Source: Selaginella moellendorffii (lineage: Eukaryota > Plantae > Lycopodiophyta). Taken from it: DNA of 64,000 bases. Position 1 is the stretch's first letter; the number at the start of each line of letters is the position of its first letter. The stretch covers positions 935,771 through 999,770 of the forward strand of contig NW_003314314.1 of NCBI RefSeq assembly GCF_000143415.4. The letters run 5' to 3'. Below the pieces are notes generated by a model. It saw only the letters and a list, made by a program, of their open reading frames with translations, searched no databases and was not told the origin of the DNA. The position numbers were made by a program, and so were the translations under genes. Shown piece after piece: positions 18,701 to 61,672 of the stretch.

Positions 18701-19539
18701 CTCCCCACCAACGGATTCTTCCACGGCTGCCGCTCCCTAAGCCGAGGTAGCGCGTATACTTGCATGTCATTCGCCAGGTATTTTTTTCTATTCGTTTTGA
18801 ACTGACCTTTATTCAATAAATATTCATAATGTATCCAAATTTTAAATAAAAACATAAGTTAGCTCGAATGGTGTTTGATAAGATCTTTGCTCAAGAAAAT
18901 ACATATAGTGGAACAATCAAAAGAGAAATACTTGTTTTACTTGCTAGATGGGCATATATGGCTGTGGTTGCACATGACAGGTGTGGATATGATTTTTTGT
19001 TTTTCATTATGGTAAGCAATTTGTGATTGTAAGTTTTGGGAGGAGGTACAATTGAAATATACCTAAAGTGTGGCAAGTAATTTGTGATTGCAACTTTAGG
19101 GGGGAGGTACACCTCCCAACAAAAAGGTTTACATAGCTTAGCAAAAAAATGTATTGACCTGTAAGATATATGAATTCAAAACACATGTGTTTTAATTGTC
19201 TAAACATATGTATGATTCATAAAATAATCTTTGGATGTAATTTTTTTTTCAAGTCATAAGCATGTATGCCCTGTATGAATTTTGCCCTCATATAAAATCC
19301 ATATCAATGCGTTATATGTATATCAACTTTATTACAATAGTAGGGTTTTCTATATGAATTGGGTTAGTAATGATGAGTAGAGCACCTTTATGTTTTGCCA
19401 ATTCTTCTTAAGCGGTGAGTGTAAATCATAAATTTTTCTCTTCTAATTTGCTAATTTACCTTGTTTATCTGATTACCTTTGCTTTCGCTTCAATTACTTG
19501 GATTCAATTATTTATTGCATAAGCAACAAGGTATTAGCC

Positions 19540-19910
19540 ATTTATCAATAGATTCCTAAACTCTATCCAAATCCCCCTCCTTGGATTAAAAGTTTAGTTA
19601 CGCTCCTTACAAACATAAACACATCACTTTCTAGATTCTTAATATCCCTTAATATAAAAAAATTTGTTCATGGGACCTTTAAATCCCAAAGCTTAAATAC
19701 ATATCTTAATTTGAACCTTAGGGGGAAATGTGGTATAGGTACCTTAACTCCCCACTTCCAATTTAAAGGGAAGGCTTAGAATAAGGCAAGGTACTTAATG
19801 GGGCACCATTCCACTTAAGCTGAGAGCATTGTAATCAATTTCCTTTCTAAAAGTGAAAGTTGTTCTTAAATATGTCTTAAAGGAGCTTTTAGGCCCAGTA
19901 CTTTGCAATC
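19540..19910 (-). mobile_element. Possible highly degraded L1 LINE RT fragment
   Basis: Frameshifted KYLG-like (~19895) and K-x-x-GG-x-G-like (~19575) motifs in the expected order within AT-rich DNA. Confidence 0.25.
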
Positions 19911-27275: not shown

Positions 27276-27348
27276 CGCCGCCCGTGGGGCTCGAACCCAC
27301 GACCACAAGGTTAAGAGCCTTGCGCTCTACCAACTGAGCTAGGGCGGC
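27276..27348 (-). tRNA. tRNA-Lys (CUU)
   Basis: GCCGCCCTAGCTCAGTTGGTAGAGCGCAAGGCT-CTT-AACCTTGTGGTCGTGGGTTCGAGCCCCACGGGCGGCG; complete cloverleaf; T-run terminator follows. Confidence 0.96.
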
Positions 27349-33008: not shown

Positions 33009-33182
33009 TGTGAGTGCATAGAATATGGAAAGGGAATACAGAAATGTGCATATCAATTAGCCCAAAAACCCTAGTTTATATACAGGAGCGAGTGGTTCGG
33101 ATTGAAACCAATCCGACGGCTACCAAAATCCATTACGCTAATATTAGTATACGGCATCGTAACCGTACACTTGGCCCTCACA
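33009..33182 (-). repeat. 3' LTR of gypsy copy 2
   Basis: TGTGAG...CTCACA termini; adjacent to the PPT. Confidence 0.93.
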
Positions 33183-33649
33183 TCATCCCCTCCTCTCGGA
33201 ATAATGGAAGGCCGTCAGGGTTCTCTTGTAGACGGGCCGGGATCTGGAGGAACGTCAGGAGGAGGCATTGGCGGATCTGTAGACGGTATTAACTACTCCT
33301 GATCCCTTTGTATGAAGCGTTTTAACCGCTGCACATGCACAATCTCCGGAGGATTGGCCTGCTGAACGTCATGCCGAACCTCATAAACTTGCGGTCCAAC
33401 TTGCCGCAACACCCGATACGGTCCTTTCCACTGCGCAAGGAGCCCCTTAGATAAACCACATACCGTAAGATAATTGTAAACCACAAATTTTTCCTTTCCA
33501 ATTTGCCAGCTTACCTCGTCTACCCGTCCAACACCGCCTTGGCTTTTGCTAAGTTCCCTTGCTAAGGTTCTCGCCTATAGTACCAGCTTCTACTTGGTCT
33601 CAGCTACTCACTGCACGAGCAACGGAGTGTTAGCCATCCATCCACGGAT

Positions 33650-34275
33650 TGTAAGCAACTAAAGGGAACGACTCGAGAGACGATCCATAGGGGTTCAAAT
33701 ATAAAGGGAAAAGGCCCATGAATAAGAGTGCACCCCCTTTTCCAATCGGTTAAGGGTCTTGGGATATTTGGGGTTAAGCGTCCTTGGGTGTGAATAGTAC
33801 TGGGTTGGGTGACCTCCCGGGAAGTCCAAACTCAGGAGCTTACATTTGGTATCAGAGGGGTCTTGGGTCCGACTCTGTTGGTTGGCTAAGGCTTGGGTCC
33901 GACTCTGTTGGTTGGCTAAGGGAATCGCACCACATGTTGATTGACATCTGGCTGGTCCAGTTTTGCTCCCGCTGGGCTCGACCCGAGGGGTAGGGTGTCA
34001 AGAGAGCGGGGCTCTCGAGAGAGCTGCGGCTCTCAACTTCCGTTCACGAGGGCGTGAACTTGCAGGGAAGCGTGGTGGATTGTAAGCAACCAAAGGGAAC
34101 GACTCGAGAGACGATCCATAGGGGTTCAAATATAGAGGGAAAGGGCCCATGAATAAGAGTGCACCCCCTTTTCCAATCGGTTAAGGGTCTTGGGATATTT
34201 GGGGTTAAGCGTCCTTGGGTGTGAATAGTACTGGGCTGGGTGACCTCCCGGGAAGTCCAAACTCAGGAGCTTACA
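33650..34275 (+). mobile_element. Cassandra-type TRIM (626 bp) with a 5S rRNA-derived segment in each LTR
   Basis: 195-bp TGTAAGC...GCTTACA direct repeats at 33650-33844 and 34081-34275 (4 mismatches); tRNA-iMet PBS TGGTATCAGAG at 33847-33857; 236-bp non-coding interior; 5S A-box to C-box sequence in both LTRs. Confidence 0.92.
33773..33827 (+). promoter_or_regulatory. 5S rRNA-derived Pol III internal control region in the Cassandra LTR (second copy ~34204-34258)
   Basis: GTTAAGCGTCCTTGGGTGTGAATAGTACTGGGTTGGGTGACCTCCCGGGAAGTCC compared with recalled plant 5S GTTAAGCGTGCTTGGGCGAGAGTAGTACTAGGATGGGTGACCTCCCGGGAAGTCC. Confidence 0.88.
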
Positions 34276-37200
34276 ATGGGGAAAACGGACTAACACCAAA
34301 TCATCCACTTTGTACTCCGCAGGTGGACGATGATGGGAGTTGTAGCGCCGTTGTTGTCCCACTTGTACGCGGCCTAAGTGTTCGGCAGACTCTGCTCGGA
34401 CAAGTGGAAGAATGCTTGTCAAATATTGATCCCATGACCTAGCATCAGGAGCTCGTGGCAATCGCGAAGGTAAACCCAACTCTGTTGGTAATATTGGATC
34501 ATGACCATATAAAAGTTTATATGGTGAAGCACCAATAGAACTCTGCACCCCTGTGACATAGGCATACCGAAGAGACGGCAAATAACCATCCCAATCCGAA
34601 TGCTGAAAGTTCACATACTTCGAAATCATCCCTTTGAATGTTCGAACGAGCCGTTCCACCAGACCGTCTGATTGTGGATGATAAGCACTCGTAAAAGTGT
34701 GGCGTATCCCCAAACGAGATGTCAAAACATGAAATACCTCAACCATAAATGCAGGACCATTATCCAAAAGAATCCGCTCTGGACAAGAATGCTGGAACAC
34801 CACTCGATTGAGGAGGAAGTATCCAACAGCAGTTGCAGAGGCACTAGCAAGAGCACCAACTTCCACCCAACGAGTCAAGTAGTCAGAAGCAATAATAACA
34901 TACTCATTGCCAGCAGTCAATCGTGGAAAAGGTCCCATAAGATCAAACGCCACCAACTCAAACGGACGGGAAACTGCAATTGACTCACATACCGGATAAT
35001 ATCACGTCGCATCTCTGGCCAATAAAAAGATTTGTGCAGCTTCTCGGTGACACGACGGTGTCCCATATGCCCACCTAGAACAGGAGAATCATGGTAGGCA
35101 TGGAGAAACCGCGGAATAAACACCGAAGGTACCACCAATCGTAAATGATCATCAGGATCCGTCCCCACAAAATAAAGAAGGCCATCTTCAAGGTGATATT
35201 GAGAATGTAAATGCCGGAAAGGCAAGTCATCAGCAAGTGATGTAGGATTCTCAAACCCATCTCGAAGCCTTCGAATCCACGGCTCAATCTTCTGAGCCTC
35301 GCGAACCTCCTCAAGAGAAGGCAGATCTTGCTCTGCACCCTGTGGACACTGAACGTCAAGGACAGCAACCGCCGACGGCACAGAATCCTCATCTAGAAAA
35401 TCCACAGATGCTGGAACAACAGGTTCGTCAGAATGGTGAGAAGTGAGTGAAGAAGGAAGAGGAGCTCGAGAAAGGGCATCAGCATCAGCCATAGAACTCC
35501 CTGGGCGATGAACAACATCGAAATCATATATCTGAAGCTTCAAAGCCCATCGAGCCGTACGACCAACCAGGTTCTTTTGCTTCAATAATGAAGTAACAGC
35601 AGCATGGTCACCTTCAAGTAACGTCTGAGAACCATGTAGATATGCATGAAGTTTCTCGAAACCCCAGACTACTGCTAAACACTTCTTCTCCGTCGTGGAG
35701 TAGTTCATCTTCGCTGGTTGTAATGTACGGCTTATGTATGCAATGGGATGGCGCTGACCAGGCACACTCGAGCTCTCTTGCATCAACACACCTCCAAGAC
35801 CAATGTCAGAAGCATCCACGCGCAAAATAAAAGGTCGAGTGTAGTCAGGATATGCCAAAACCGGAGGAGTTGTCAATAGCTCTTTGAGATCCACGAACGC
35901 CCGCTCACAATCCGGAGACCAGATGAAAGATGATGTTGATGACTTCAGCAACACTCGCAATGGTGTAGTGCGATCGGAAAGATGATCCACAAAACGACCA
36001 AGATACTGCACCTTACCCAAAAAGCGCTGCACATCATTCACACACTTCGGAGTAGGGAACTTTAGAACATCCACAAGTTTGTCAGGATCAACTTGCAAAC
36101 CCTCACGAGAAATACGGTACCCAAGATAAGTTGTGTCCTTGGACCCAAACACGCACTTCGACCGCTTCAGCTTTAAACCAACGTCGCATAGCCGATCCAA
36201 CACTTTACAAACATCACGAACGTGCTCCTCCCACGTCCCCTCCGAGTGGATCAAGACATCATCAATGAAGTCAGCAGTCACCTCCGGCATATTGCAAAGA
36301 ACTTCGTCCATCATCCGCTGGAAAGTTGCTAGAGCATTGTTCAAACCAAACGGCATCACCAAGAACTCGTACAAACCAAATGGTGTACGAAAAGCAGTAT
36401 TAGGAATATCTTCTTCGGCCATTGGTACTTGCCAATACCCAGAAGCAAGATCTAGCTTGGTGAACCAACGACTTCGCCCCAGACGATCCAAGAGATCAGC
36501 AGTGTGAGGAAGAGGATACACATCTGGGATCGTCACTTCGTTTAACGGACAATAGTCGATGCAGAAACGAATACTCCCATCAGGCTTCGTCACAAGATGA
36601 GGTTCACATGCCTAAGGACTCCGCGACTTCCAAATAACACCCTTTTCCAGCATTTCCTTGACGTTTGCTCGTAAAATTTTGATCTCTTTAGATGACCGAC
36701 GACGAACAGGAACCTTGATTGGACGAGCATCCCCGGTGGGAATTGGATGACATGTGGCAATCTTGGCCCCAGACAAGAGGTCAAATTCAAAGAGATCAGA
36801 ATACTCCTTCATGAGCCAGTCAACTGCTACAACACAAAGATCATCGGAGGGATCGGAAAAAGGGAAAAGCAGAACAAGATGGAAACACAGAAGGAAAGAG
36901 TGGGGAAACAAAAGTAATGGAAGCAGAGGTAGAAGTAGAGGGACGAAGAGGTATGGAAGTGAGAGGAATGGATGAAACATAAGGAAGTATGAGACAAGGG
37001 GGAGAAGCCTCAAAGTCACACTTGGCATGATTGTGCTGCAACCAATCCATACCAAGAATGAGGTCAAAAGTTTGACTCGGCACCACCCGCAACGACTGCA
37101 ACTCAAGCTCGAGATCGCCTACACGCACAACCAGGTCCACCTCATCCCGTGCACATGCATGTGTACGGCCGTTGCCATAAAGAATGAAAACTGGTTCTGC

Positions 37201-37482
37201 CGCACGACGCAAGTGTAGACGACAACGTGTGGCAACAGGTCGATGTGAGACACAAAATCCCTAGGCCCCAAAGTGGAGCCGGAAAGGGTGCCACGTGGTA
37301 GTGGCTGAAGCGAGAGCCAAACGAGCGTAACACGTTTGGACCAAAAGCTCCGACTTGAAAAGTCAAGAGCGGGAGTGGAACTCCCAACGAAGTGCTCGAG
37401 GAACGAGCACGAAGCGAGCAAAAAGTGAGGCTCCAAAAAGGGACCCAAAAGGACCAACACATGACACGTGGAAGTGTCCAAG

Positions 37483-37905
37483 ATGGACTCGAGTTGGAGT
37501 CCGAAGTGGAGTCCGAGATGGACCCGAGTTGGAGTCCGAAGTGGAGTCCGAGATGGAGTCCGAGATGGACCCGAAATGGAGTCCGAGATGGAGTCCGAGA
37601 TGGACCCGAGATGAAGTCCGAGATGGAGTCCGAGGTGGACCCGAGATGGAGTCCGAGATGGAGTCCGAGGTGGACCCGAGATGGTCCCGAGATGGAGTCC
37701 GAGATGGAGTCCGAGGTGGACCCGAGATGGACCCGAGATGGAGTCCGAGATGGAGTCCGAGGTGGACCCGAGATGGACCCGAAATGGAGTCCGAGATGGA
37801 GTCCGAGATGGAGTCCGAGGTGGACCCGAGATGGACCCGAAATGGAGTCCGAGATGGAGTCCGAGATGGACCCAAGATGGAGTCCGAAGTTGAGACCGAG
37901 ACCGG

Positions 37906-37937
<32 letters not shown>

Positions 37938-38045
37938 TCGAGACCGAGACCGAGACCGAGGCCGAGGCCGAGACCGAGCCCGAGCCCGAGTCCGAGTCCG
38001 AATCCGAGTCCGAGTCCGAGTCCGAGTCTGAGTCCGAGTCCGGAG
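37483..38045. repeat. Minisatellite in LTR1: mixed 12/11-bp units (GGAGTCCGAGAT/GGACCCGAGAT) grading into hexamers (GAGACC, GAGTCC)
   Basis: Directly visible tandem array; it produces the low-complexity ORFs in all six frames. Confidence 0.95.
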
Positions 38046-41000
38046 CCTGAGAGGGTGAAAGCCCAAAGCGTTCGTCTCCCAAACCCTGGGGGGTTTGGTG
38101 AGCTCCAAAAGTATAGTAGGGGGAGGACTGCAGTGGAGCTAGTTTGGCCAGGAAAGGCCAGTTTGGCCCAGGAAGGCCGGACCCAGTGTTGGGTGATGAG
38201 CTGCCCACTGGGAAGTCCAAGACTAGAGTGAACACGGACCGACAAGTGGGGTAGCTTGGTGAAGTGTTCAAGAGCCGGCTCTAGTTCCCCCGGGAGATCG
38301 ACTGGCCGATGCTCCCAGTCCAAGTGTGGGTGGCACTACCTACTTGGATACCTGGTGTGGCTCAACGGAACCCGCTCTAAGCCCATGGCTAGAGCACCCA
38401 AGGGCAGAAGGCGAGGAGAGTACCCAGGTGGCTCGCGTAAGGCCACGGTGTTCCGAAATGTTGTCCCAAAGGCCCAGACTGTGGAAAGGAAGAGGAGCAG
38501 TCCTCTGGGGTAGTGACCCAGGACACAGTCGTGTGGTGAGGAAGTCCTAGAAGACCGTGGGACTTAGTGGTCGGACCTGTGGGTCTCGATCCAATGGCAG
38601 TGTTGGCAAACACGGCCAGGGGCAAAAAGGGACTTAGTGGGGACTAACGGAGGGATATCGGGGAAGGCTATTCCCCTTGTCGGTGGGCATCCTAAGGATG
38701 CTAAGGAGTGGATCTGAGATGACCACTCACGGATGGTTTGCCTAGTCTTGGAGAGCCAAGACGGTGATGCAAGTGGTATTGGACTACCAGTGTGGCAAAG
38801 GTGATTGGGCATGGCCTTAGCGTAATGGGCTGCTATGTCGGTGGTACCTTTGAGTGTCGGTCATGGGATCGGTCATGTGGAGCACTTGGACCAAGTGCAA
38901 ATGTTGAGTGGCATGGATGCCATTCTCGGGGCTAGCAAGTCCCAAGTCCTGGATTGGACTTATGGAGGTTGTGAATGAGACTCCTCCAAGTGGTCAGAGG
39001 TGCGGTTAAGTGACTAAAGTAGAATGGAAAATTTAGTCGCTTACAATTTGGTATCAGAGCTGTTCCTTAGTCCAACTTTTATTGGTGCTCAAGTATATCA
39101 CCACTAGTGTTGGCATCGGAAGGTCCGAGGAGTGGGCCTATCCTTGAGGAGTAGCAAGTCGGGAAGACATGGCTCTCCATTACAGTTCATGTGTGAACTT
39201 GTAGACGAGGTGGTGGATAGAAAAGGGCCAATAATGGAACGACTTTGGGATCTTGGGAACAGTATATGGTTTTCCTCAAAGAGTTGAGGATGTGATCCAG
39301 ATGAGCGTTTGACTTAGCAAACTGGCTAATGTAGTTGTGGTAAACAACTACAGTTAGGATCACGAGAAAGAGAAAGACTCCAAAGCAATAAAGGAGTCAC
39401 AAGATCTTCCTCATATAGTTGAGGTTGGTGCTCATGAATGTGAGACCAGAAGTAATGACCGTGGGAGGTCAAATACGGAAGAGGACTCAAGTCCTGGAAA
39501 TGGTAGCCGGGGCTACCTCTAATAAATGCTGGAACAACCCAAGGAGTTGGGGGTGTATTAAGTAAATGAGTTGGTGTTCTCATCACATGGACAAGTAGTC
39601 CTGAGGGGCAAAGGTTGCCCCCAGAGAACAAAATCAAGTGTCGGAGTAACACTTGTGAAAATAGTCCTTTTGAGTAGGACAAGAATGCAAGAAGTGTATT
39701 CCAGTGAGCTAGTGCCTCACAAGTAGGACCTTACGGGTCTGTGGATTAACCAAGTCCAAAACTGCTGGATGACTCAAGTAGAGTCAACGGATGGTCCTAA
39801 AAGGACTGATGGAAGCATTTGGACTAAAGTGTGTTGTACCCCACAAAGGATGGGGGGGGATCATAGGATCCAAGGATGAGAACAAAGGGTATCTCATCGA
39901 TGGCAAAATGTGCCATGCTAAAGTTATGGGAAAGGTGTTCCCAGAAGAAAACAACTTTGACATAAAGTTGTGTGTGACCTCTATGGTGCAGTGCTAACGG
40001 ATGGTTGGCATGAGAAAGAGCGGTGTTGGTCTTGGCATAGACTTAGACACGAAGGGGAAATGTCATAGAGGTAGGCTCGTGGAGCCGATGGTGTGGAGAC
40101 ACCAAATGTGCCAAGGTGTGATACCTTGAGGCTATGTTGGTGGGTTCATGAGAACCCCTTGCCAAAGGAATCCCAATGGAAATGGGAATAGCATAGCCTA
40201 AACTGCAGAGCATGCAGTTGGAGTGTGGTGACCCAAATAATGATGGAGGTGTGAAAGCACCAAACAATGAGTTGTAGGACTTGACAACTATGAGGCAACT
40301 AAGCAAGAGGTGCAAAATAACTGGTTAAACGGGTAGAAGGTAGCTACCCAAGACTTCTTAATAGCATAGGGAAGTTGGATATACCCTTACGGGGGATAAG
40401 TTGTTTGTGTTGCGATATAGTAAGTCAATGTTATAAAAGGAAATACTCATTGTCAAGAAAGCCATCATTGGGACACTCGAACACTCTAGAACACCAGAAG
40501 GTGGTGTTTGATGTCGCGAGGGCAATGGATAAAGCCCAAGGGACTAAGTCCCTAGCGAATGATGGATAGAAAGTGCTATCCAAATGTCCAAGGTTGTGGA
40601 GACAGAAGAGGACTGTCTACCCGAGTTGGACAAAGCCAAAAATGGAATTTTGGCAAGGCTAGTGATGGGCATGTAAAGGCCCATAAGCAACAATGTAATC
40701 CCAGTGTGTGGGATTATAAGGTGAGCATACCCGGATTGAGGAACCACTCCCTAGGCTATTGGGTAGGTTCATCCCTAAGAATACTTGCTAAAGCATGATA
40801 GAAAGTGCAAAGCTATCCTCCTGGTCTGGAGGAGAATGACCAAAAGAAAGGTGTGAAGCCAAAAAGCAAGAAGTAAGGGGATAGAACCGAACCATAAGGA
40901 ATCAAAGGGCATAACCAAGGTTAGTTATGCCAGCTGGGAGTGGAGAATCAAGTGGGGGCTCGAGGGTGTTGCCGCTAGCAACCATGATGCCATGGAGAGT

Positions 41001-43385
41001 CTAAAATATGGAATTGTCCATGTTAGACTATGTGGCATTTGGAAGGCTTGCAAAAAGGGAGGCCTTAGCAAGCTGAGGGACAGAGTTCCTTCAAGGTTCC
41101 CAAAGACGATTCTAGGTAGCTTAGTACCTAGAAAGGCCAAGTGTAAATGGTTCATGGAACGCGCGAAATCAGAGTGGCGCAGCAGAAGCGTGGTCTTGAA
41201 GCTTGCCATGAGGCAAGGCTATCAAGGTTAGGGAAGTAGTTCCCGAGTGTTCAAAGAGAGGGCTTTGAACGAAAGTCGATGGTCAAGGACTTTCACGCTT
41301 ATGCAGGAACCATGTTACAGTGGTCGGAGGACTTGCCAAGCGAGATTGGCACGTCGGGGGAACAAATACCCTAGTTGAAGGTGATAACTTCAAAAAGGGT
41401 GGGCCATGGGGCCGAGCATGGAGGAGTCCATGCATGATCACAGATATATCAAGTGAGAGGACTTGGCAGTGTGGAGGAACTAGGTTCCTAAGCTGTGATC
41501 TGTAGCGCGCTTTAAAAATAAGTTGGTGCACTGGCGTGGGGAGTCATGCCAGGCATCTTGTGTGATGCCGTCCGTAGATGCATATACGGAGGTTGGGTTC
41601 GAGTCCCGACCCTTTAGTGCTTGGGTTCGAGTCCCAAATCACTAGGGCGTGGTGATGGTTTGGAATATGAGGACACTCATATTTCGGTGGTCATGGACTC
41701 TCAGTGGGGAGACTGGTTTGGGCACACCGCCAAGCGAGGGATGCCTCGGAGTCGTGATGCACGGTTAGATTGCTTAGTGTGAAAGCTCGGCATATCTAAC
41801 TTGAACGCTTTGGTGCAAGTGGCACTAAGGACGTGGTGAGTGAGATGGGGACACCTAATCTCAGTTGCTATGGACCCTTGGCCGGAAGGGCTGGCTTGGG
41901 CGCACCGCCAAGTGTGGGGGATGCCCCCGGGGTCGTAGTTAACAAGTTAAAGGTCTGAAAGACCTAGTACCTATTAGCAAACCTGTTAAGGTGCCGAGGT
42001 GAGATCACTAGGTGATCTTATGGCTAGATAAGGACAAGGTCCTTGGTTGGCTAAGGAATGAAGTTCCTGGTTCAAAATGTTGAAATTGAACTGTTTAAGG
42101 TGGTGTGGCTTGGTCGTGATGACCAAGTGGGAAGAGCACCTAAGGGAAATAAACTATATCCGTGCGATGGCATAGTGAGTCCGAGGAAAGTAGTCTTTAT
42201 AAAAGACCCATGGGAGGGTCACGAAGTTGGGCCGTGGATAGAGCCCACAGCAAAAGATGCTAAAGAGACGTACTAGGGGTGAACATCCTCCGGACTTGGC
42301 AAAGAAGAGTCTTTGCTATGGAACCGAAACAATACCTCAAGGAGGGAGGTAGAGATTCGATGTTGCTTGGTGCAACAATCAACGGATAGGAGCAAAAGAT
42401 GAGTGGCCAAGATAGGGCCGTGGAATCCCTTGGAAGGAATCCAAGTGACAAAGTTAGGCGAGGAACACTAATGTGTTGGACGCTAATAAGTTGCGGGAAA
42501 GGAAGTGTGTTTCCAATGAGGGATTCCGAAATGCTCCGATTTGGCAAAAGTGGAATCTCCAAGGGGAGGAGCGGTAAGGTAGCCAAATGATAGGGTTATG
42601 AACAGCCCTAGCACAAAGTATGATAACTGGAACTTTGGCACGAAATAGAAGAGAGGATGATGGTGCCCTCGAGTAAAGAACTTCCTAGGATGGGAAGTGG
42701 AGTTGCACAAAAGGTGCAAGGCAAGGTGTCGGAGACACCTGGGAAATTGACTCCAAGAAGTCAAAATTCAAAGTTCCAAAGTGCAAAGGTTATATCGATG
42801 GAAATTGAGACTACTCGAGAAGGAGTAGTGGGATTGACTTAGAGAAGGGTCTCTAAAAGGTTTAGCGAGAACTAAACCAATAAAAGGAGAGAACCACTAT
42901 ATGTGGTCCAATCAGTCTCTAAGTTGGAGAGACTACCCTCCTTAGAGGATATGCAAAAGGCATGGTGAGCCTTCAATGTCCAACCATTGACGAATATGGA
43001 GAAGGCATGGTGAGCCTTCAATGTCACACCATTGACAAATATTGGCTAGGTGCCAAGGATGGAAATGGTAACACATGCGAGTGTTACTTTACAAAATGGT
43101 TTACCGTTCGATGAGGACATCGAACTTCGTCTATGGGTGGTGGAGTTGTGAGACACAAAATCCCTAGGCCCCAAAGTGGAGCCGGAAAGGGTGCCACGTG
43201 GTAGTGGCTGAAGCGAGAGCCAAACGAGCGTAACACGTTTGGACCAAAAGCTCCGACTTGAAAAGTCAAGAGCGGGAGTGGAACTCCCAACGAAGTGCTC
43301 GAGGAACGAGCACGAAGCGAGCAAAAAGTGAGGCTCCAAAAAGGGACCCAAAAGGACCAACACATGACACGTGGAAGTGTCCAAG

Positions 43386-43820
43386 ATGGACTCGAGTTGG
43401 AGTCCGAAGTGGAGTCCGAGATGGACCCGAGTTGGAGTCCGAAGTGGAGTCCGAGATGGAGTCCGAGATGGACCCGAAATGGAGTCCGAGATGGAGTCCG
43501 AGATGGACCCGAGATGAAGTCCGAGATGGAGTCCGAGGTGGACCCGACATGGAGTCCGAGATGGAGTCCGAGGTGGACCCGAGATGGACCCGAGATGGAG
43601 TCCGAGATGGAGTCCGAGATGGAGTCCGAGGTGGACCCGAGATGGACCCGAGATGGAGTCCGAGATGGAGTCCGAGGTGGACCCGAGATGGACCCGAAAT
43701 GGAGTCCGAGATGGAGTCTGAGATGGAGTCCGAGGTGGACCCGAGATGGACCCGAAATGGAGTCCGAGATGGAGTCCGAGATGGACCCAAGATGGAGTCC
43801 GAAGTCGAGACCGAGACCGG

Positions 43821-43852
<32 letters not shown>

Positions 43853-43954
43853 TCGGGACCGAGACCGAGACCGAGGCCGAGGCCGAGACCGAGCCCGAGT
43901 CCGAGTCCGAATCCGAGTCCGAGTCTGAGTCCGAGTCTGAGTCCGAGTCCGGAG
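43386..43954. repeat. Same minisatellite in LTR2 with slightly different unit numbers
   Basis: One more 12-mer and one fewer hexamer than LTR1 (LTR lengths 1808 vs 1802 bp). Confidence 0.92.
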
Positions 43955-45140
43955 CCTGAGAGGGTGAAAGCCCAAAGCGTTCGTCTCCCAGACCCTGGGG
44001 GGTTTGGTGAGCTCCAAAAGTATAGTAGGGGGAGGACTGCAGTGGAGCCAGTTTGGCCAGGAAAGGCCAGTTTGGCCCAGGAAGGCCGGACCCAGTGTTG
44101 GGTGATGAGCTGCCCACTGGGAAGTCCAAGACTAGAGTGAACACGGACCGACAAGTGGGGTAGCTTGGTGAAGTGTTCAAGAGCCGGCTCTAGTTCCCCC
44201 GGGAGATCGACTGGCCGATGCTCCCAGTCCAAGTGTGGGTGGCACTACCTACTTGGATACCTGGTGTGGCTCAACGGAACCCGCTCTAAGCCCATGGCTA
44301 GAGCACCCAAGGGCAGAAGGCGAGGAGAGTACCCAGGTGGCTCGCGTAAGGCCACGGTGTTCCGAAATGTTGTCCCAAAGGCCCAGACTGTGGAAAGGAA
44401 GAGGAGCAGTCCTCTGGGGTAGTGACCCAGGACACAGTCGTGTGGTGAGGAAGTCCTAGAGGACCGTGGGACTTAGTGGTCGGGCCTGTGGGTCTCGATC
44501 CAATGGCAGTGTTGGCAAACACGGCCAGGGGCAAAAAGGGACTTAGTGGGGACTAACGGAGGGATATCGGGGAAGGCTATTCCCCTTGTCGGTGGGCATC
44601 CTAAGGATGCTAAGGAGTGGATCTGAGATGACCACTCACGGATGGTTTGCCTAGTCTTGGAGAGCCAAGACGGTGATGCAAGTGGTATTGGACTACCAGT
44701 GTGGCAAAGGTGATTGGGCATGGCCTTAGCGTAATGGGCTGCTATGTCGGTGGTACCTTTGAGTGTCGGTCATGGGATCGGTCATGTGGAGCACTTGGAC
44801 CAAGTGCAAATGTTGAGTGGCATGGATGCCATTCTCGGGGCTAGCAAGTCCCAAGTCCTGGATTGGACTTATGGAGGTTGTGAATGAGACTCCTCCAAGT
44901 GGTCAGAGGTGCGGTTAAGTGACTAAAGTAGAATGGAAAATTTAGTCGCTTACAGTCGAGCAATAGAAGATAAACTCGAACTTATATCAACCAATACGGA
45001 GAGAATAATAGGAGACTTCTTGTTATAAAAACGAACTTGGAAAGTAAACACTGGATGAACTGGTGCCGAGTGAACCCCTTGATGATACTCCCGAAAGAAA
45101 GATGGAGGGGTCACTGATTTATTCGCGCAAGGTCCCTCCG

Positions 45141-46073
45141 TTACTCGCGCGACTCCTCGTTTCCCTGATGCATCTTGGTGTCCAGGCCTTCCACTGCAGC
45201 AGCACCCAGGGGACGTTGCTGACGCCAAGGTCTCCACCCAGGAAATGGAGGTCGCCAATCCGGAAAACGACGGCAACGCCGATAAGTATGACCAACTTCA
45301 TCACACGCCCAGCAGCGAACATCACGGCCACGACCACGTCCTCGCGCTTGTCCTTGGACTCGAGCAGCAGCAGCATCAACCTCCATTGGAACAGGACCAT
45401 CACCCATAGGAAGTGGAGCGGAAGGACGTGTAGCGAGAAGTGGAAGAGGCGACATCTCATAATGTTGTGCCAAGCGAAGAGCATCGTCAAGGGTGGCAGG
45501 AGCAAGTGCATGCACAAGTCCGACAAGATCTTGACGAAGTGCTGGCCACAACATTCCTAGCTTGATCCGCTCCGACATATTTGGCTCCGCACGAAGCAAA
45601 AGACTTCGGAAAAGAACGCCAAATTGCATCACCGACTCCGATGGCCCTTGGCGAAGACGATGCAATTGTTGGAAAGCATCATCACAATCATCGGCATGTC
45701 CGAAGGCGCGTTTGAAGACGTCCGGGAGAACACTCCAATCCCCACGAGTAGCTGCGCTCAAACCATTGTACAACTGCAACGCCGTCCCTTGGAGATATGT
45801 GGGAAACTCACGCAACCGTCGAGCATCATCCCAAGAATGATATGTGGCAATCACCGTAAAGTGATCAAACCAATGGTACACATCATCCCCAGGATTCCTG
45901 CGAAAGAACTCCGGCCGAACGCGAGGATTGGCACCAAGAGCAAGAGGAGTTCTACCACGTGCCGTGAACGCCGCCATCAACTGAGTTTGGTTGTTCAATT
46001 GCAAGTGCATAGCATCAAGCAATTGAACCAACTGCTGCTCTAGAGTCAAAGGAGGAGATTGCGGATCGGCCAT
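45141..46073 (-). CDS. gag: Gag of gypsy copy 2 (intact ORF)
   Basis: MADPQSPPLTLEQQL...CWACDEVGHTYRRC...HQGNEESRE*. Confidence 0.9.
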   Translation of the reverse strand: MADPQSPPLTLEQQLVQLLDAMHLQLNNQTQLMAAFTARGRTPLALGANPRVRPEFFRRNPGDDVYHWFDHFTVIATYHSWDDARRLREFPTYLQGTALQLYNGLSAATRGDWSVLPDVFKRAFGHADDCDDAFQQLHRLRQGPSESVMQFGVLFRSLLLRAEPNMSERIKLGMLWPALRQDLVGLVHALAPATLDDALRLAQHYEMSPLPLLATRPSAPLPMGDGPVPMEVDAAAARVQGQARGRGRGRDVRCWACDEVGHTYRRCRRFPDWRPPFPGWRPWRQQRPLGAAAVEGLDTKMHQGNEESRE

Positions 46074-46307
46074 GAAGATGAACGAAAAAGAAAGAGCAAA
46101 GAAGAGAAATGACAAAAAAAGCTGGAAAGAAATGGTAGATCTAGATAATGCAAAAAACTAGATCGAAACCAAAATCCTGAAAGGAAAGAACAAAAGAAAG
46201 GAAATGGAAAAAGCTAGATCTAGACGATGCAAAAGCTAGATCTAAACCGAAATCCCAAATCCAAGCACTCCCCAGGGACAATCAAAGGTGCCCCTCATTT
46301 CCACCAA

Positions 46308-46481
46308 TGTGAGTGCATGGAATATGGAAAGGGAATACAGAAATGTGCATATCAATTAGCCCAAAAACCCTAGTTTATATACAGGAGTGAGTGGTCCGGA
46401 TTGAAACCAATCCGACGGCTACCAAAATCCATTACGCTAATATTAGTATACGGCATCGTAACCGTACACTTGGCCCTCACA
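46308..46481 (-). repeat. 5' LTR of gypsy copy 2
   Basis: Followed on the minus strand by T-TGGTGGAAATGAGGGG (PBS). Confidence 0.93.
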
Positions 46482-52775: not shown

Positions 52776-54548
52776 CTAAGCAAATGGGATGCAGCTGCTA
52801 CTCACACGATCAAACTGAATGGCATCGCTGCCCGCCTCGATTGTCCTCGAGTAGCACCCATCACTGCTCTGGAAACTATACGTCTGATTGAGCGCTCCAC
52901 CTCCACTCACGACCTTGTTCCCTGCGATCACGATCTTCCCAGCCGCGTCCTGCTTGTTGTCAAGCCGGCTCCAGTAAAACTCCCCGCCTCCACTGCCGTG
53001 ATGCACCTCAATCTCCTCCGCCACTCCATGGGAGATCCTCGTCTCCGAGACAATCGAGCCATCGGCGGGTGTAGTCTCGGAGTCGAACACGTGGAGCGGA
53101 TACGAGCTGGAAGTTTGCTGGAGCTCGATCTGCTCGTCGCCACTGGCCACCACGACCTTGGCATTGGTGTCGATACTCTGATCTACAGTTGTTATCTCGC
53201 CATTGTTCCCAGAGAAGTCCATCCGGTTGGAGAACGCGTAGCTGTACGAGGAGGTGGTGAAGAGCTTGCCGCGCGAGGAAGACTCGACGTAGCCCGAGTA
53301 CTGGAGAGACCGAGAGGCGGCCACCCGGAGAGAGCCGACCGGGCCTTTGTAGCGTGCGTCATAGCTGATACCGGCTGCTGGAGCGTTGTAGGAGACAAGC
53401 TGCCCGGACGTCTCAGAGCTACCGTGGTCGAGCCAGAGGTGTAAGTTGGCGTCCAGTAGCCAAAACCTGAAAGCATTGGTGACGCTGAAGCCGATCTCAT
53501 GGCTGCCACCGTCCACCAGCAGACCAACAAATGGAGTTATGTCGAGAGTGTAGCTTGGCAGGTCGAAAGCTCCGATTGCGGCTGCTGGAGCCCAAAGCAG
53601 TGGATTGATTCCACCCGTGAAGATCACTGGCAAGGGACAGATCTCTCCCGCGAGGAACCCGTCGACAGTGACCAGAACTTCTCTGTAGGGACCGTTCCTG
53701 GAAGCCGTGTTGATATTGTTGGCGTCCAAGTAGTCGTTCGTGGGATTCATGTACCAGAACTCGTCGTTGCCGTGGAAGGAGACGTAGACCTCGAGCTTGG
53801 CCTTGTAGATGTTCGTCGGGAGATTGCTCAACTCCACGCGGCCAGCGTCGGAGCTGTTTTGGATCTGGAACCAGTAGCCACCGTTTCCCGAGGTTGGCAG
53901 CGCGACTGGAAGAACAATATCGGCAGGAGCCTCGGCATCCACCAGAGAAGAAGACGAGTTGGACGACTTGTAGAAGTTGGCAGTGAGCGTCACGTTGAAA
54001 AACCCGGTGTAAGTCTCGTCGATCACATTGGCTAGCGCGACTTCCAAACTCTGTGGCTTGTCTAGCAAGGCACGATACTTGGTGACGTCTTTCTCTACCG
54101 TCCAGAAGATCCCTTTCCTGGTCGGCTCGGCGGTGGACGTCCGGAAGATCTCCACTCCACTCAGCCACACGGCCGAGATCCGATCGAACTGCCGGCCTTT
54201 GGACGTGACATTCCAGACGAGGATCACCTTGTCCCAATCTTCGCTACACTCGGGAGCTTGAGGAGGATTGTAAGGCACCACGACCGGCGGCGAGCTGATC
54301 GTGTTGCCGAAAGAATACTTCAGCAGCAGCTGCGACGCGCAGTGGCCTGACTTTGGAACTGAAAGTGGCTTGCTCACCTCGAAAAACCTTGAAAGGGAAT
54401 CCTGCTGCTGCTGTTGCTGCTCATCAACTGAGAACGCTGGTCGTCGAGGCTGCTCGAAATCCAGGTCCCCCAGCTGAAACCTGCTGCTTCTCCCAGGAAT
54501 CGCCTGAGCCACTGCCGCCAAAAGTAGCAGGAGCACCACCAGCGCCAT
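52776..54548 (-). CDS. Peptide-N4-(N-acetyl-beta-glucosaminyl)asparagine amidase A (PNGase A), copy 1, intronless
   Basis: Signal peptide; FFEVSKP; GRQFDR; RTSTAEP; HGNDEFWY; GPYREV; PVIFTGGINP; DITPF; LHLWLD. Confidence 0.93.
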   Translation of the reverse strand: MALVVLLLLLAAVAQAIPGRSSRFQLGDLDFEQPRRPAFSVDEQQQQQQDSLSRFFEVSKPLSVPKSGHCASQLLLKYSFGNTISSPPVVVPYNPPQAPECSEDWDKVILVWNVTSKGRQFDRISAVWLSGVEIFRTSTAEPTRKGIFWTVEKDVTKYRALLDKPQSLEVALANVIDETYTGFFNVTLTANFYKSSNSSSSLVDAEAPADIVLPVALPTSGNGGYWFQIQNSSDAGRVELSNLPTNIYKAKLEVYVSFHGNDEFWYMNPTNDYLDANNINTASRNGPYREVLVTVDGFLAGEICPLPVIFTGGINPLLWAPAAAIGAFDLPSYTLDITPFVGLLVDGGSHEIGFSVTNAFRFWLLDANLHLWLDHGSSETSGQLVSYNAPAAGISYDARYKGPVGSLRVAASRSLQYSGYVESSSRGKLFTTSSYSYAFSNRMDFSGNNGEITTVDQSIDTNAKVVVASGDEQIELQQTSSSYPLHVFDSETTPADGSIVSETRISHGVAEEIEVHHGSGGGEFYWSRLDNKQDAAGKIVIAGNKVVSGGGALNQTYSFQSSDGCYSRTIEAGSDAIQFDRVSSSCIPFA

Positions 54549-54609
54549 GCCGCAACTTTTAGGCCTTTTACGAGAAACTCCCGCCACCTTTGGTTTATAA
54601 ACTGCCTAT

Positions 54610-56367
54610 TTAAGCGCTGGCGATGCATCGAAAACCACTTTCATCGTACTGTGTTGTAGTGTTGCTCGTTCGGATGCTCCGGTGGTAACATCCCTCGCTG
54701 CTCTCGGACACATAAGTCTGGTTTAGCTTTCCCGTCCCACTGGTGACTATATTCGCTTGGATGACGATTTTCCCGGCAGTGTCTTGCTTGTTGTTGAGCC
54801 GGCTCCAAAAGGAGTCGTCGTCGTATTCTTCTTGAAGTCCATGCGAGATCCTGGCGTCTAAAACAACAGACTTGTTGGTTCCATCCTTCTGTGAGTTGTA
54901 GAGAAAGAAAGGGTACGAGCTCGACTTCTGCTGCAATCTAACCTGCTTGGAGCTGCTTTCCACCAGGAACTTCGTCTGTGCATCGATGAGCTGCTTTACT
55001 GTGGAAACGCTGCCATTTTCGGAGAAGACCATCTGGTTGGAGAACTTGTAGCTGTACGATGAAGTCGTTATGAGCTTCCCGTGAGAGGAAGACTCGACGT
55101 AGCCCGAGTACTGAAGTGACCGAGAGGCAGACAGCAGAAGAGTACCGTCGAGACCTTTGTAGTGTGAGTCGTAACTGATAACGGCTGGAGGAGAGCTGTA
55201 AGAGATGAGCTTTCCGGACGTTTGCGAGCTACCATGGTCCAGCCAGAGGTGTAAGTTGGCGTCCAATAACCAGTTCCTGACAGCGTTGGTGACGCTCAAG
55301 CTGATCTCGTGGCTGTTCCCATCCACCAGCTGGCCAACAAACGGAGTTACGTCGAGAATGTAGGTTGGTAGATTGAAAGCCCCGATTGCTGCTGCTGGTC
55401 TCCAAAACAGTGGATTGACGCCACCCGTGTAGATCACTGGAAAGGGACAAATCTCTCCAACAAGCTTCCCGTCCAGAGTAACCAGCACTTCCCTGTAGGG
55501 ACCGTTCCTGGAGCCCGAACTGCTTTCACCGTTGGCGTCCAAGTAATCGTTCGTTGGATTGGTGTACCAGAACTCGTCGTCACCATGGAAGGAAACGCAG
55601 ACCTCGAGCTCCGCCTTGTAGATGTTTCGAGGAAGACTGGTGAGGTTCACAGTTCCAACGTGGGAACTGTTTTGGAGCTGGAACCAGTAGCCACCATTCT
55701 CCGAAGTTGGCAAAGCGATTGGAAGAACGAGATCAGCGGGCATCGCCTTCGAAGAGCGCTTGGAGTTTCTCTGAGCGGGCTTGTAGAACTCGGCAGTGAG
55801 GGTGACGTTGAAGAAGCCCGTGTAAGTTTTGTCGATCACGTTCGCAAGAGAGACCGCCAAGACCTGTGGCTTCTCCAGCAACGAAGTATACTTCGTGATG
55901 TCCTTCTCGACGCTCCACACAATCCCTTGCTTGGTAGGCTCCGCCGTGCAAGTCCGGAAGATTTCCACTCCAGACAGCCATGCTGCGGAGATTCGGTCGA
56001 ACTGCCTGCCCCTGGATGCTACGCTCCACCTGAGGATCACTCTCTCCCAACCCCCACCGCAGTGGCTCGATCGGGGAGGATTATAAGGAGCAGTGACCGG
56101 GGGCGAGCTGATCGTGTTGCCGAAAGAATGCTTTAGCAGCAGCAGCGTCGCGCAGTGGCCGGATCTAGGGATGGACAGCGGCTTGCTCACCTCGAAGAAC
56201 GTCAGTGGAGCTGGATCTGGGGCTGGCGCTGGAGCTGGCGCTAGCGAGGAATGCCGGTGTTCGGAGTGCTCGAAATCCAGGCCGCCGAGACGAAATCTAC
56301 CTTTCCCTTGCGCCGTCGCCGCCAGGAAGAGCAGGAAGAGCACAAGCGCCATGGATTCCCTGGTCAT
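54610..56367 (-). CDS. PNGase A, copy 2 (tandem paralogue), intronless
   Basis: Same motifs (GRQFDR, RTCTAEP, HGDDEFWY, YTGGVNP); start at ATG 56367 or 56352. Confidence 0.93.
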   Translation of the reverse strand: MTRESMALVLFLLFLAATAQGKGRFRLGGLDFEHSEHRHSSLAPAPAPAPDPAPLTFFEVSKPLSIPRSGHCATLLLLKHSFGNTISSPPVTAPYNPPRSSHCGGGWERVILRWSVASRGRQFDRISAAWLSGVEIFRTCTAEPTKQGIVWSVEKDITKYTSLLEKPQVLAVSLANVIDKTYTGFFNVTLTAEFYKPAQRNSKRSSKAMPADLVLPIALPTSENGGYWFQLQNSSHVGTVNLTSLPRNIYKAELEVCVSFHGDDEFWYTNPTNDYLDANGESSSGSRNGPYREVLVTLDGKLVGEICPFPVIYTGGVNPLFWRPAAAIGAFNLPTYILDVTPFVGQLVDGNSHEISLSVTNAVRNWLLDANLHLWLDHGSSQTSGKLISYSSPPAVISYDSHYKGLDGTLLLSASRSLQYSGYVESSSHGKLITTSSYSYKFSNQMVFSENGSVSTVKQLIDAQTKFLVESSSKQVRLQQKSSSYPFFLYNSQKDGTNKSVVLDARISHGLQEEYDDDSFWSRLNNKQDTAGKIVIQANIVTSGTGKLNQTYVSESSEGCYHRSIRTSNTTTQYDESGFRCIASA

Positions 56368-56503
56368 GGAGTCCACCTAGGGTTTATCGACGGGAAATTT
56401 TAATAAACCCTTTGAGCATATACCAGAATATTCTTCACTCGTATGTAGTCCTTTACTGCATTCCCGCCATTAGGGCCTAGGGTTTATCACCTTGGCGGTG
56501 GCG
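56368..56503. promoter_or_regulatory. Compact (~136 bp) divergent promoter region shared by PNGase A and MSH2, with two telo-boxes
   Basis: CTAGGGTTTATC at ~56377 and ~56477 between the two head-to-head ATGs. Confidence 0.5.
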
Positions 56504-59500
56504 ATGGCGATGGAGGCGATGGAGGACGATCCCAAGCTGCCGGAGCTCAAGCTAGGTGCGCCTCGCCCGCGGTATTCTAATGTACTCCTTGCCTCAATTG
56601 TTTCCTCGCAGATGCGAAGCAAGCTCAGGGTTTCATCAAGTTCTTTCGCAAGCTGCCAGAGGTAATCATCCAGTTCTTATGTTTTCTTCCTTGATCTTCT
56701 TGCGCTGGTCACACAGGATCCATCAGTGATTCGGTTCTTCGATCGACGGGTAAGTGCTTGAGTTTTTGGTTTTCCCTTTCATCAAGAGTTCTACATTTTT
56801 CTTTTCAGGACTATTTCACTGCCCACGGGGACAATGCTAGTCTTATCGCCAGGCTCTACTATCGAACCACGACCGCTCTTCGTCAGGTTGGATCTGGGTC
56901 TGATACTCTCTCCAGCGTAAGCATCAGCAAGAGCATGTTTGAGGTGATCACTCGGGACGTCCTGCTGGAGAAGACCGAGTACAACGTGGAGCTCTACGAA
57001 GGCAGTGGAGGAAACTGGAAGCTCGCAAAGTCCGCAACTCCGGGAAAGCTTGGGAGCTTCGAAGACGTCTTGTTCTCGAGCATCGACATGCACGACACGC
57101 CGGTGGTGATGGCAGTCTGGACAGTCGCCCGTGATCAAGAGCAGCTCGTCGGCATAGCCTTCACGGATATGACGAGAAGGACGCTGGGCACACTAGAGTT
57201 TCTAGACGACGATCAATACACAAACTTGGAGTCGGCTCTGCTCGCTCTGGGATGCCGGGAGTGCGTTCTTCCTGCGGAAAATGCCAAGAGCGTCGACGGT
57301 CGGAGACTCCGAGACGTGCTGGCTCGATGCAACGTGCGACTGACTGAGAAGAAGAAGGCGGAGTTTAAGTCCCGAGACATCGAGCAAGATCTAAGCCGGC
57401 TTATCAAGAGTACATCGGTTGAGGAGCTCCGAGAACTCGTTGTCAAGTATGAAGTTGCGTCAGCGGCATTAGCAGCTCTACTTGCGTACACCGATATCTT
57501 CGCAGACGACAGTAATCACGGGAAGTATAGGCTTCAGCAGTACAGCCTCGACAGATACATGCGGCTGGACGCGGCCGCATTGCGAGCGCTGCACGTACTC
57601 GAGTCCAAGAATGATCCGAACAAGAACTCGACCCTCTTTGGACTGATGAATCGCACGTCCACTGCTGGGATGGGCAAGAGGCTACTGAACAGGTGGCTGA
57701 AGCAGCCTCTACTTGACGTCGATGAGATCAAACACAGGCATGACGTCGTCCAGATGTTTGTAGAAGACGCCGAGCTGCGGGAAAGTTTAAAGAACTGCCT
57801 CAAACGTGTGCCGGATGTTGAGCGCCTGACACGGAAGCTCGAGAGGTCGAGAGCTACGTTGCAAGACCTCGTGAAGCTTTATCAGGTTCGTAGTTATTGA
57901 ACACCTTGCTTACTGTGTCTGATCATTGGTATACAGGTAAGTGTTCGTCTCTCCGTCGTCAAAGATGCTCTTGAACGTTATGAAGGCGAGTTTGCGTCCG
58001 CCATCGAGGAACGGTACGTCGTTCCGTTGAGAGAGTGGACGCTTGCTGAACATCTCGGAAGATACGACGCACTGATCGAAAGCGCCATCGACCTGGATCA
58101 AATCAAGAATGGCGAGTACATCATTTCGGCATCATATGACAGCAGCTTAAAAACCATCAAAGCTGACCGTGATGCTGTGGAGGAAGAGATCCGTGAAGCT
58201 CATGAACAAGCCGCGAACGATTTGGATCTTCCTGCTGATAAGTCGCTGAAGCTGGACAAAACGACGCAGTGGGGGCACGTATTCAGGATCACGAAGAAGG
58301 AGGAGCCTAAAGTTCGCAAGAAACTTGCGGTGCAATACATCACCTTGGAAACTCGAAAGGATGGGATAAAGTTCACGACTTCCAAGCTTCGAAGGCTTAG
58401 CGAAAGATATGGGAACCTGACAGAAAATTACACCAACACTCAAAGGGATCTTGTTAAGAGGCTGGTTCAGGTTTCACAGAGCTACGTTGAGGTATGCTCG
58501 TCGATTCTTCTGCGTTGGTGATTTTATACGTTTTTTACTTACTGCAGATTTTTAATGGTGCGGCAAACCTGCTGGCGGAACTGGATGTCTTGTTAAGCTT
58601 TGCGGATCTGGCTGTAAGCAGTCCCACGCCTTACGTAAGGCCTATTATCACTGGACAGGTAAGTGCTGCAAACTTGTTATAAAAGTATACTAAGAAATTT
58701 CATTCATTTTACTAGAATGAGGGCGATATTATCTTGGAGGGAAGCAGGCATCCTTGCGTAGAAGCTCAAGATGACGTGAACTTCATCCCAAATGATTGTC
58801 GCCTGGTATTTGTGCTTAGACCCCTTCGATGTCTATGTGTTCTAATTGTTTCTTTACAATGCAGATTCGAGGCAAGAGCTGGTTTCAAATCATCACTGGG
58901 CCAAATATGGGAGGCAAATCAACGTATATCCGTCAGGTGAAGCTTAGAGTTTCTTACGTCTTACTCTGATACAAGCTCTTTTTATTTAGATTGGTGTGAA
59001 TATCTTGATGGCTCAAGTCGGCTGCTTTGTGCCCTGCTATCGTGCTGAAATCAGCATACGAAGTTGTATCTTCGCCCGGGTTGGAGCAGGAGACTGCCAG
59101 GTAACTCGGCTACGTCTTCAAGTTCTAGGAATAAAAACTTTTCCTGCAGTTGCGTGGTGTTTCAACGTTTATGGCAGAGATGCTCGAAACCTCAGCGATA
59201 TTAAAATCTGCAACTGAGACTTCTCTAATAATTGTTGACGAACTCGGCCGGGGTACCTCGACTTACGATGGATTTGGTTCGAGTTTGCTAACTGCAAGAT
59301 TTTCTAGTGCTCTCTAACGCTCTGTAACAATGGCAGGTCTGGCTTGGGCAATCTGTGAGTACATAGTGGATGTGACTAGAGCGCCAACTCTATTTGCAAC
59401 TCACTTCCACGAGCTCACGTCCATTTCTCATCGTCAAGGTCCATCAGCTCACGGTCCCAGCAAAGGTCCTCCTGTAGGAATCTCCAACTTTCACGTGAGC

Positions 59501-60129: not shown

Positions 60130-61672
60130 ATGTTTTGGGCAGTCGCGCTCTTCCTCTTCTCAGCTTTCATTCTCAAGCAATGGCTCTCCAGCAAATCTCT
60201 CAATCTTCCACCAGGTCCCAGAGGATTGCCTCTCATCGGCCACTTCCATCTCCTGGGCAGGCTCCCACACATCTCACTCCAGCAGCTCTCCAAGAGATAT
60301 GGACCCCTCTTTCACTTGCGCCTGGGATCTGTTCCTGTGTTCGTGGTCTCCAGTCCAGAAATGGCCAAGGAGTTTCTCAAGAACCACGACACGGAATTCG
60401 CCTATAGGCCTCGGAACAACGCGTCTCCATAGTCATGGATTGCAGGAGCATGTCTTTCTCGCCATATGGAGACTACTGGAAGAAGCTGAGGAAGCTCTGC
60501 GCCACGGAGATATTCACGGCCAAGAGGGTGAGTATGAACACGCAGATCATCCGGGACGAGCTCTGGGAGCTCAGTGGTGAGCTCTTGAGAGCTTCTAAGG
60601 CTGGCCAAGTTGTCGGAGTGAGACCACACTTGAGGGCGCTCAGCTTCAACGTCATGACTCGCATTCTGATGAAGAAGACGTACTTTGGATCCAAGGCCTC
60701 GGGCGATCCCGCTATTGCGAAGGAGGCCTCGAATTTCATAGCGATGATTGATGAAATCCTCGAGGTGGGAGCGGCTTTCTCGATCACTGACTATTTCCCC
60801 TACTTGAGCTGGCTCGACTTGGTTTCCCGCCGTGCAAAGGTGGCCGGGGATAAGATGAATGGCTTCTTGCAAAAGGTTTTGGACGAGCAGCGCCCCGGTG
60901 AGGTTCCCGATTTCGTGGAGATCACAAGGTCTCACATTGGAAACGATGCGGTCAATCTCAGAGCTCTACTCATGGTAAGTTACGAATCCATGATTTTCTC
61001 TGTGGAACTTACTTGATTGTTCTGTGATCTTGATAGGATCTACTGCTTGGTGGATCTGAAACATCATCCACTGTGACAGAGTGGGCTCTGGCGGAACTTC
61101 TTCACCACCCAGATTGGATGGTCAAAGCTCAGCAAGAGATTGAGAGTGTTGTTGGACGCACACGCATGGTCGAAGAGGGAGACATATCCAAGCTCGAGGT
61201 TTTGAATGCCATCATCAAGGAAACCTTTCGTCTCCACCCTCCAATTGCTTTGCTCGTACCACACGCATCGATGGAGGCCCAGAAAGTTGCAGGCTATGAC
61301 ATCTCCAAGAACGCAATGCTACTTGTGAATGTCTATGCGATAGGAAGAGACCCCCGAGTATGGTGTGATCCTCTGGAGTTCCAGCCCCAAAGATTCATGG
61401 GCAGCAACATCGGTGTCAATGGCCAAGACTTTGAGCTGCTTCCATTTGGATCTGGAAAGAGATCTTGCCCGGGGCTTCCTCTTGGTCTTAGAAACGTCCA
61501 GCTTGTTCTTTCCAATCTTCTTCATGGATTCCAATGGGAGTTCCCTGGAAGCCCAAAAGATCAACAAATGGGTGAAGTTACAGGACTCGTAAACTTTATG
61601 GCACACACTCTCAAAGCCAGGATCACTTCTAGGCTCAATGAAAGTGCCTACACCACTCTCAAGTTAATTTAA
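60130..61672 (+). pseudogene. CYP71-clan cytochrome P450, copy 1, with a 1-bp frameshift near 60423 (pseudogene or sequence error); one intron 60975-61037
   Basis: LPPGPRGLPLIGH; GGSETSS; ETFR; PQRF; FGSGKRSCPG. AACAACGCGTCTCC versus AACAACGTGGTCTCC in copy 2. Confidence 0.88.

Follow-up and report, generated by a model that had tools for sequence, protein, structure and literature searches.

A large gene-less retrotransposon of Selaginella moellendorffii contains a cassette homologous to the interior of a Cassandra-type element at the same locus

Two gene-less long terminal repeat (LTR) retrotransposons are inserted in one Ty3/gypsy element within a 64,000-nucleotide stretch of the Selaginella moellendorffii genome (RefSeq assembly GCF_000143415.4, contig NW_003314314.1, positions 935,771 to 999,770 of the forward strand; hereafter the window, numbered from its first letter). 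The host Ty3/gypsy element lies on the minus strand (33009-46481), has reverse transcriptase, RNase H, integrase and gag domains, and carries both insertions. On the plus strand are a 626-bp miniature retrotransposon with terminal repeats (TRIM) of Cassandra type (33650-34275), with a pair of 5S-bearing LTRs and a primer-binding site (PBS) for initiator methionine tRNA (iMet), and a 7711-bp non-coding LTR retrotransposon (37244-44954) of the large retrotransposon derivative (LARD) class. About 200 internal bases of the LARD match the complete interior of the Cassandra-type element, which lies 5 kb away.

The LARD is bounded by LTRs of 1802 bp (37244-39045, TGTGAG...GCTTACA) and 1808 bp (43147-44954) that are 99.4% identical to each other. 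It is flanked by a 5-bp target-site duplication, GTCGA (37239-43 and 44955-59), and where the sister copy of the host gypsy element at 1-4326 spans the insertion site, the two flanks overlap cleanly by 5 bp. The longest stop-free stretch in its 4101-bp interior spans 134 amino acids. Coding remnants were sought and rejected: none of 20 stop-free interior pieces from both strands matched a Pfam family at an E value below 0.1, and tblastn of the window's gypsy proteins and of metagenome copia and gypsy polyproteins found no similarity in the LARD. A preliminary description of this DNA had called the element non-coding, and the open reading frame (ORF), Pfam and tblastn searches all agree with it. 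Between the cassette described below and the region preceding the 3' LTR, the non-coding interior (39246-43105) is unlike Cassandra, the LARD LTR or the rest of the window. Tandem arrays of some 45 12-nt units followed by hexamers (37476-37996 and on to 38042 in the 5' LTR; 43379-43951 in the 3' LTR) fill about a third of each LTR and give spurious ORFs of up to 393 amino acids on both strands.

This element is characterized as a LARD by its length above 4 kb, its long LTRs, the presence of both PBS and plus-strand primer tract, and its target-site duplication, and many structurally uniform copies of it are present in an independent DNA run. Contigs from that run gave 132,369 pieces that fall on 38100-43370 and are 90-100% identical to it; transitions prevail among the differences. 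These pieces cover 30 of 30 bins, and the depth in LTR bins is roughly double that in interior bins. The large element is a young, very abundant, non-coding LARD.

The small element is a Cassandra-type element. Its 195-bp LTRs (33650-33844 and 34081-34275) are 97.4% identical and enclose an interior at 33845-34080. Both LTRs match the Rfam 5S_rRNA family at 30 bits, and both fit a box A - 18 nt - box C search pattern taken from PMC7215508 with 2 mismatches, as does no other place in the window. No report of a 5S-bearing TRIM in a lycophyte, or of Cassandra in Selaginella, was found in the searchable literature, where papers place Cassandra in ferns and seed plants; a TRIM survey of Selaginella has no Cassandra family among those listed. 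A 178-bp stretch (33472-33649) that starts with TGTAAACCAC separates the host gypsy sequence from the 5' LTR of Cassandra. Relative to the sister gypsy copy, the stretch plus Cassandra make up a single 804-bp insertion that lacks a clean 5-bp duplication (ATAAT versus ATGGG), and together they may represent another chimeric integration. A relative at 19420-19611 is decayed, AT-rich and solo-LTR-like (TGTAAA...CCTTACA).

The large element is not a Cassandra, because it has no 5S promoter. The published 5S pattern found no match in it with up to 3 mismatches, box C none with up to 1 mismatch, box A none, and Rfam 5S none at E values up to 10; at 7711 bp it also falls outside the 565-860 bp size range of Cassandra, within which the 626-bp element fits. 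It is presumably transcribed by RNA polymerase II (Pol II). The preliminary description had seen a giant Cassandra relative and a likeness to the end of the 5S box C in the large LTR. The giant Cassandra is contradicted by 1.8-kb LTRs that lack the 5S promoter, are unrelated in their bodies to those of Cassandra and resemble them at the tips only. The C-box-like stretch (38185-38224) holds an exact 11-mer, but once the whole 1.8-kb LTR is searched, 37 of 400 and 19 of 400 controls (5-9%) score as well as this stretch, so that the likeness is at chance level.

The Cassandra-like cassette of the LARD occupies 39046-39245 on the plus strand. It comprises a spacer, the iMet PBS, a leader that includes a CACCAC box (39099-39104), a stem-loop (39184-39199), the tract GTGGTGGA (39210-39217) and a stub of a Cassandra LTR start (39218-39245). 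To compare the two interiors, the 154 bases after the PBS (39062-39215) were aligned with the Cassandra interior (33861-34080) under three scoring schemes (match/mismatch/gap: 1/-1/-2/-1, 5/-4/-10/-1 and a strict 2/-3/-5/-2). None of 1000 dinucleotide shuffles and none of 3000 random window segments reached the observed score under the first two schemes (z 6-8), whereas 7 of the 1000 shuffles and 21 of the 3000 segments did so under the strict one. The alignment is collinear, contains many gaps and stops at the landmark GTGGTGGAT in both elements. The match then goes on for about 25 bases into the start of the Cassandra 3' LTR, with 18 of 24 positions identical, as far as GGAACGACT at 39237-45, which ends the stub. 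Beyond 39251 homology to the Cassandra LTR falls to chance level (z 0-2); a degenerate Cassandra LTR reaching to about 39490 can be drawn with a permissive alignment, and was rejected at that level. No second PBS, LTR or interior Cassandra unit was found beyond 39250 in the LARD, whose interior is almost without self-similarity.

The ends of the two elements are alike as well. Ten of the 14 first and all 7 last bases of their LTRs agree (TGTRAG... and ...GCTTACA). When the last 57 bases before each 3' LTR (43090-43146 and 34025-34080) were compared, with positions fixed in advance, 0, 6 and 37 of 3000 controls reached the observed score, depending on the scheme. Much of what the preliminary description had claimed about these regions therefore stands: that some 170 bp after the PBS of the large element are collinear with the whole Cassandra interior, that a Cassandra LTR start follows, and that a pre-LTR tract is common to both. 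The sequences that it quoted are all present, with boundaries off by one base.

It should be noted that part of this resemblance is generic. In both elements the PBS TGGTATCAGAGC lies directly internal to the 5' LTR (39049-39060 and 33847-33858), and the preliminary description had counted the GCTTACA end and iMet PBS among the links between them. Both features are indeed present in both elements, but a scan of metagenome contigs for GCTTACA followed after 1-4 bases by an iMet PBS returned 112 loci (L001-L112). These include copia elements (L052, L001, L010 and L061), gypsy elements (L006 and L007, the latter with an identical junction) and chance bacterial matches. Because the junction is found in copia and gypsy loci alike, the LTR end and PBS are weak evidence of kinship. 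The junction is common in these contigs and belongs to several large families, mostly copia, that probably stem from plant DNA among the sampled material. In 98 loci the sequence is long enough for the post-PBS region to be compared, and in none of them does this region resemble the interior of Cassandra or the leader of the LARD; the highest score is 15, against 23 observed. Since no control leader resembles either element, the leader similarity is specific, at least when judged against elements from other organisms.

The plus-strand primer regions follow one design at three sites: a stem-loop of the form GTTC...GAAC, 11-12 bases, and then GTGGTGGA. In Cassandra, the stem-loop (GTTCAC / GTGAAC), 12 nt and a GTGGTGGA-T tract adjoin the 3' LTR (34042-34080, plus strand). 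In the LARD, a stem-loop (GTTCGATG / CATCGAAC), 11 nt and a GTGGTGGAG-T tract adjoin the 3' LTR (43106-43146, plus strand), and this is the working plus-strand primer region of the element. The third site is at the end of the cassette. Three sites in 64 kb compare with 0.01 expected, a count that is illustrative and partly circular, as the pattern was written after the sites had been seen; the same pattern is absent from the 112 control loci (642 kb). Between Cassandra and the 3' copy of the LARD, stem pairs 5 and 6 show compensatory changes that preserve the pairing (A-T to G-C and C-G to A-T). Single-sequence folds place a CACCAC/GTGGTG helix at the base of both cassettes, where it closes them. 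In a published Cassandra fold the PBS comes to lie beside the plus-strand primer tract (PMC7215508, figure 3), and the predicted folds recall it.

The cassette is a trait of the LARD family and not a peculiarity of this copy, as the bin that holds most of it is as deep as the other interior bins in the DNA run and separate pieces lie on 39130-39345 at about 90% identity. One contig of 2580 bases, from a run guessed to be RNA, departs from this arrangement. It follows the LTR to 39046, has one letter, and then continues at 41347-42864, with about 96.5% identity; at its junction the LTR end is followed by 2 bases and a TGG-initial sequence in the place of a PBS, and the cassette is skipped. This contig could come from a sister lineage with another primer site, in which case 39047-41346 would be an added module. 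The existence of a variant without the cassette suggests that the cassette is a movable module. The TGG-initial stretches at 41347-41365 and 39251-39268 are alike at 13 of 18 positions, and the placement of the former next to the LTR in this contig hints at modules stacked at the 5' end, or else at a second, alternative site for the primer. The site at 41347 was tried as a PBS for the window's only tRNA gene, tRNA-Lys(CTT) at 27276-27348 on the minus strand, and does not match it.

Taken together, the LARD and Cassandra are homologous at the LTR tips, in the PBS and leader, and in the plus-strand primer region. Integrase acts on LTR tips, reverse transcriptase and RNase H on the PBS and primer tract, and Gag on the leader. 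As the shared signals are positions that are read in trans, one helper lineage is the likeliest working model. We therefore favour, with a probability of about one half, the explanation that both elements share a replication-signal module, by which the same autonomous element or close relatives of it would copy both gene-less families in trans. The cassette would have moved between the families, in one direction or the other, probably by template switching between co-packaged RNAs. The homology, the motif at three sites, the lack of genes and the abundance are observed, while the common helper and the recombination route are inferred. An exchange is suggested because the homology crosses the boundary between interior and LTR and because a sister variant lacks the cassette. 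Template switching is favoured over a gradual change in size since the LARD keeps an inner primer tract and a stub of the Cassandra LTR start; gradual growth or shrinkage is less likely.

Several observations weigh against a common helper and an exchanged cassette, in addition to the circularity of the stem-loop count. The energy of the hairpins in 56-nt windows is no better than that of shuffles. The window holds one copy of each element, and no autonomous element with these signals was found in its 64 kb. The controls for generic motifs are elements of other organisms and not of this genome. The variant contig is a single record, and it may have arisen through deletion at a TTGG microhomology instead of being ancestral. 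Two raw RNA-seq runs contain 6 and 9 reads on the LARD per 9.2 million records each, and the family is nearly silent in them. A protein search with the gypsy pol returned no Selaginella loci and searches with two LARD ORFs returned nothing, blanks that are uninformative on absence.

The host gypsy family was ruled out as the helper, because its PBS is not of the initiator-tRNA type; its primer tract and LTR tips also differ, and its LTRs are short (33009-33182 and 46308-46481). The window contains two copies of this one Ty3/gypsy family (1-4326 and 33009-46481), which are 92-94% identical in pol, and the copy at 871-4326 has an open pol reading frame of 1151 amino acids. Ordinary genes flank the repeats: besides the tRNA gene there are a tandem pair encoding PNGase A, a homologue of MutS and a cytochrome P450; gene spans listed around the repeats are 52776-56376 on the minus strand and 56758-58521 and 60435-61672 on the plus strand.

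Both elements might instead be independent internal-deletion derivatives of one autonomous ancestor, with their signals inherited vertically and no exchange of a cassette. TRIMs are known to originate in this way, as OsajRetroS10 did from OsajLTRA10 (PMC4717578); moreover, all of the common parts are cis signals, and the two stem-loop/GTGGTGGA repeats in the LARD could drive deletion to a TRIM-sized form. Plain deletion, however, predicts neither an internal copy of the pre-LTR tract nor the stub at 39218-39245. The LTR bodies are unrelated and no ancestor is at hand, and we regard this history as unlikely, though deserving of some weight. We think it rather more doubtful that a broad iMet-primed lineage of this genome has these leader and pre-LTR motifs throughout, so that the resemblance would not single out this LARD and Cassandra. 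Such a lineage would account for a junction that is common to copia and gypsy elements, but 0 of 98 other leaders are alike, 0 of 112 loci have the stem-loop with GTGGTGGA, and the signals of the window's own gypsy family differ. A chance alignment of two G+C-rich non-coding stretches is very improbable: the strict scheme (7/1000 and 21/3000) and the many gaps needed would fit it, whereas the two other schemes (0/1000 and 0/3000), the collinear blocks with equivalent end landmarks and the separately significant pre-LTR comparison at positions fixed in advance would not.

The preliminary description had gone further and proposed a TRIM-LARD continuum, in which the large element was perhaps an enlarged Cassandra that arose from tandem copies. 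Tandem arrays of Cassandra are indeed known (PMC7215508), a Cassandra LTR-start stub closes the cassette, and a permissive alignment can be drawn over 39251-39490. Yet that alignment is at z 0-2, neither the PBS nor an LTR or interior unit recurs, the LARD has neither box A/C nor an Rfam 5S match, and the C-box resemblance does not exceed chance. A tandem-array origin found no support, as there is no internal repetition and nothing Cassandra-like past 39250, and the variant contig without the cassette fits the gain or loss of a module better than a continuum of sizes. We consider an expanded Cassandra improbable, and the earlier reading is partly supported: it was right about the shared signals and wrong about a giant Cassandra. 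A replication-signal module shared by the two families, and exchanged between them, remains the explanation that we favour.

The two elements can be compared with several known systems. Like the LARD, described Cassandra elements have an iMet PBS right after an LTR ending ...TTACA and no coding capacity, and like the cassette they have a short self-complementary interior that draws the PBS and the plus-strand primer tract close to each other (Kalendar et al. 2008; PMC7215508; PMC10853983). They differ in their 5S-derived RNA polymerase III (Pol III) promoter and in their size of 565-860 bp, whereas the LARD has 7.7 kb and 1.8-kb LTRs without box A/C. The Sukkula LARD of barley (Kalendar et al. 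2004, as cited in PMC7215508) resembles the Selaginella LARD in its long LTRs, multi-kb conserved non-coding interior, PBS, primer tract, high copy number, recent insertions and lack of genes; the Selaginella element differs from Sukkula-type LARDs in the tandem arrays that fill a third of its LTR. No report of a LARD that shares replication signals with Cassandra was found in the searchable literature.

Sharing of sequence between small and large elements has precedents. In the pairs OsajRetroS10/OsajLTRA10 and SmoRetroS4/SmoLTRA4, a mini and a larger element share LTR-tip and internal-end sequence, as here, and such sharing has been taken as a sign of common mobilisation (PMC4717578). The LTRs of those pairs are 79-98% identical and the large partner codes for proteins, whereas the present two elements have unrelated LTR bodies and a much lower identity, and even the larger of them lacks genes. 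Kojima has argued that TRIMs driven by Pol III should share internal sequence, and not LTRs, with their putative helpers (PMC10886601). Helenus and Ajax (TRIMp3; PMC10886601) show the same pattern of internal-sequence sharing, but they bear tRNA or partial 5S sequence and were matched to coding copia or gypsy elements, while the partner here is another parasite.

Cassandra occurs across vascular plants, and recent papers still report no pointer to its helper (PMC10886601; PMC7215508). Another gene-less family, unrelated to Cassandra but with its leader and primer signals, narrows the sequences that this helper must recognise. On its own, the locus documents a further LARD and a kinship of sequence but no mechanism, and it does not identify the helper, but the cassette gives a concrete search pattern for it, and the homology may reflect a trade of replication modules among parasitic retrotransposons. 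Tentatively, and with less confidence than we place in a shared module, the cassette, with its iMet PBS, CACCAC box, stem-loop, GTGGTGGA tract and TGTRAG/GCTTACA tips, might be the recognition signature of the autonomous helper of Cassandra. If this is true, one coding Selaginella family would mobilise both Cassandra and the LARD, and the exchanges between them would be fossils of co-packaging in its particles.

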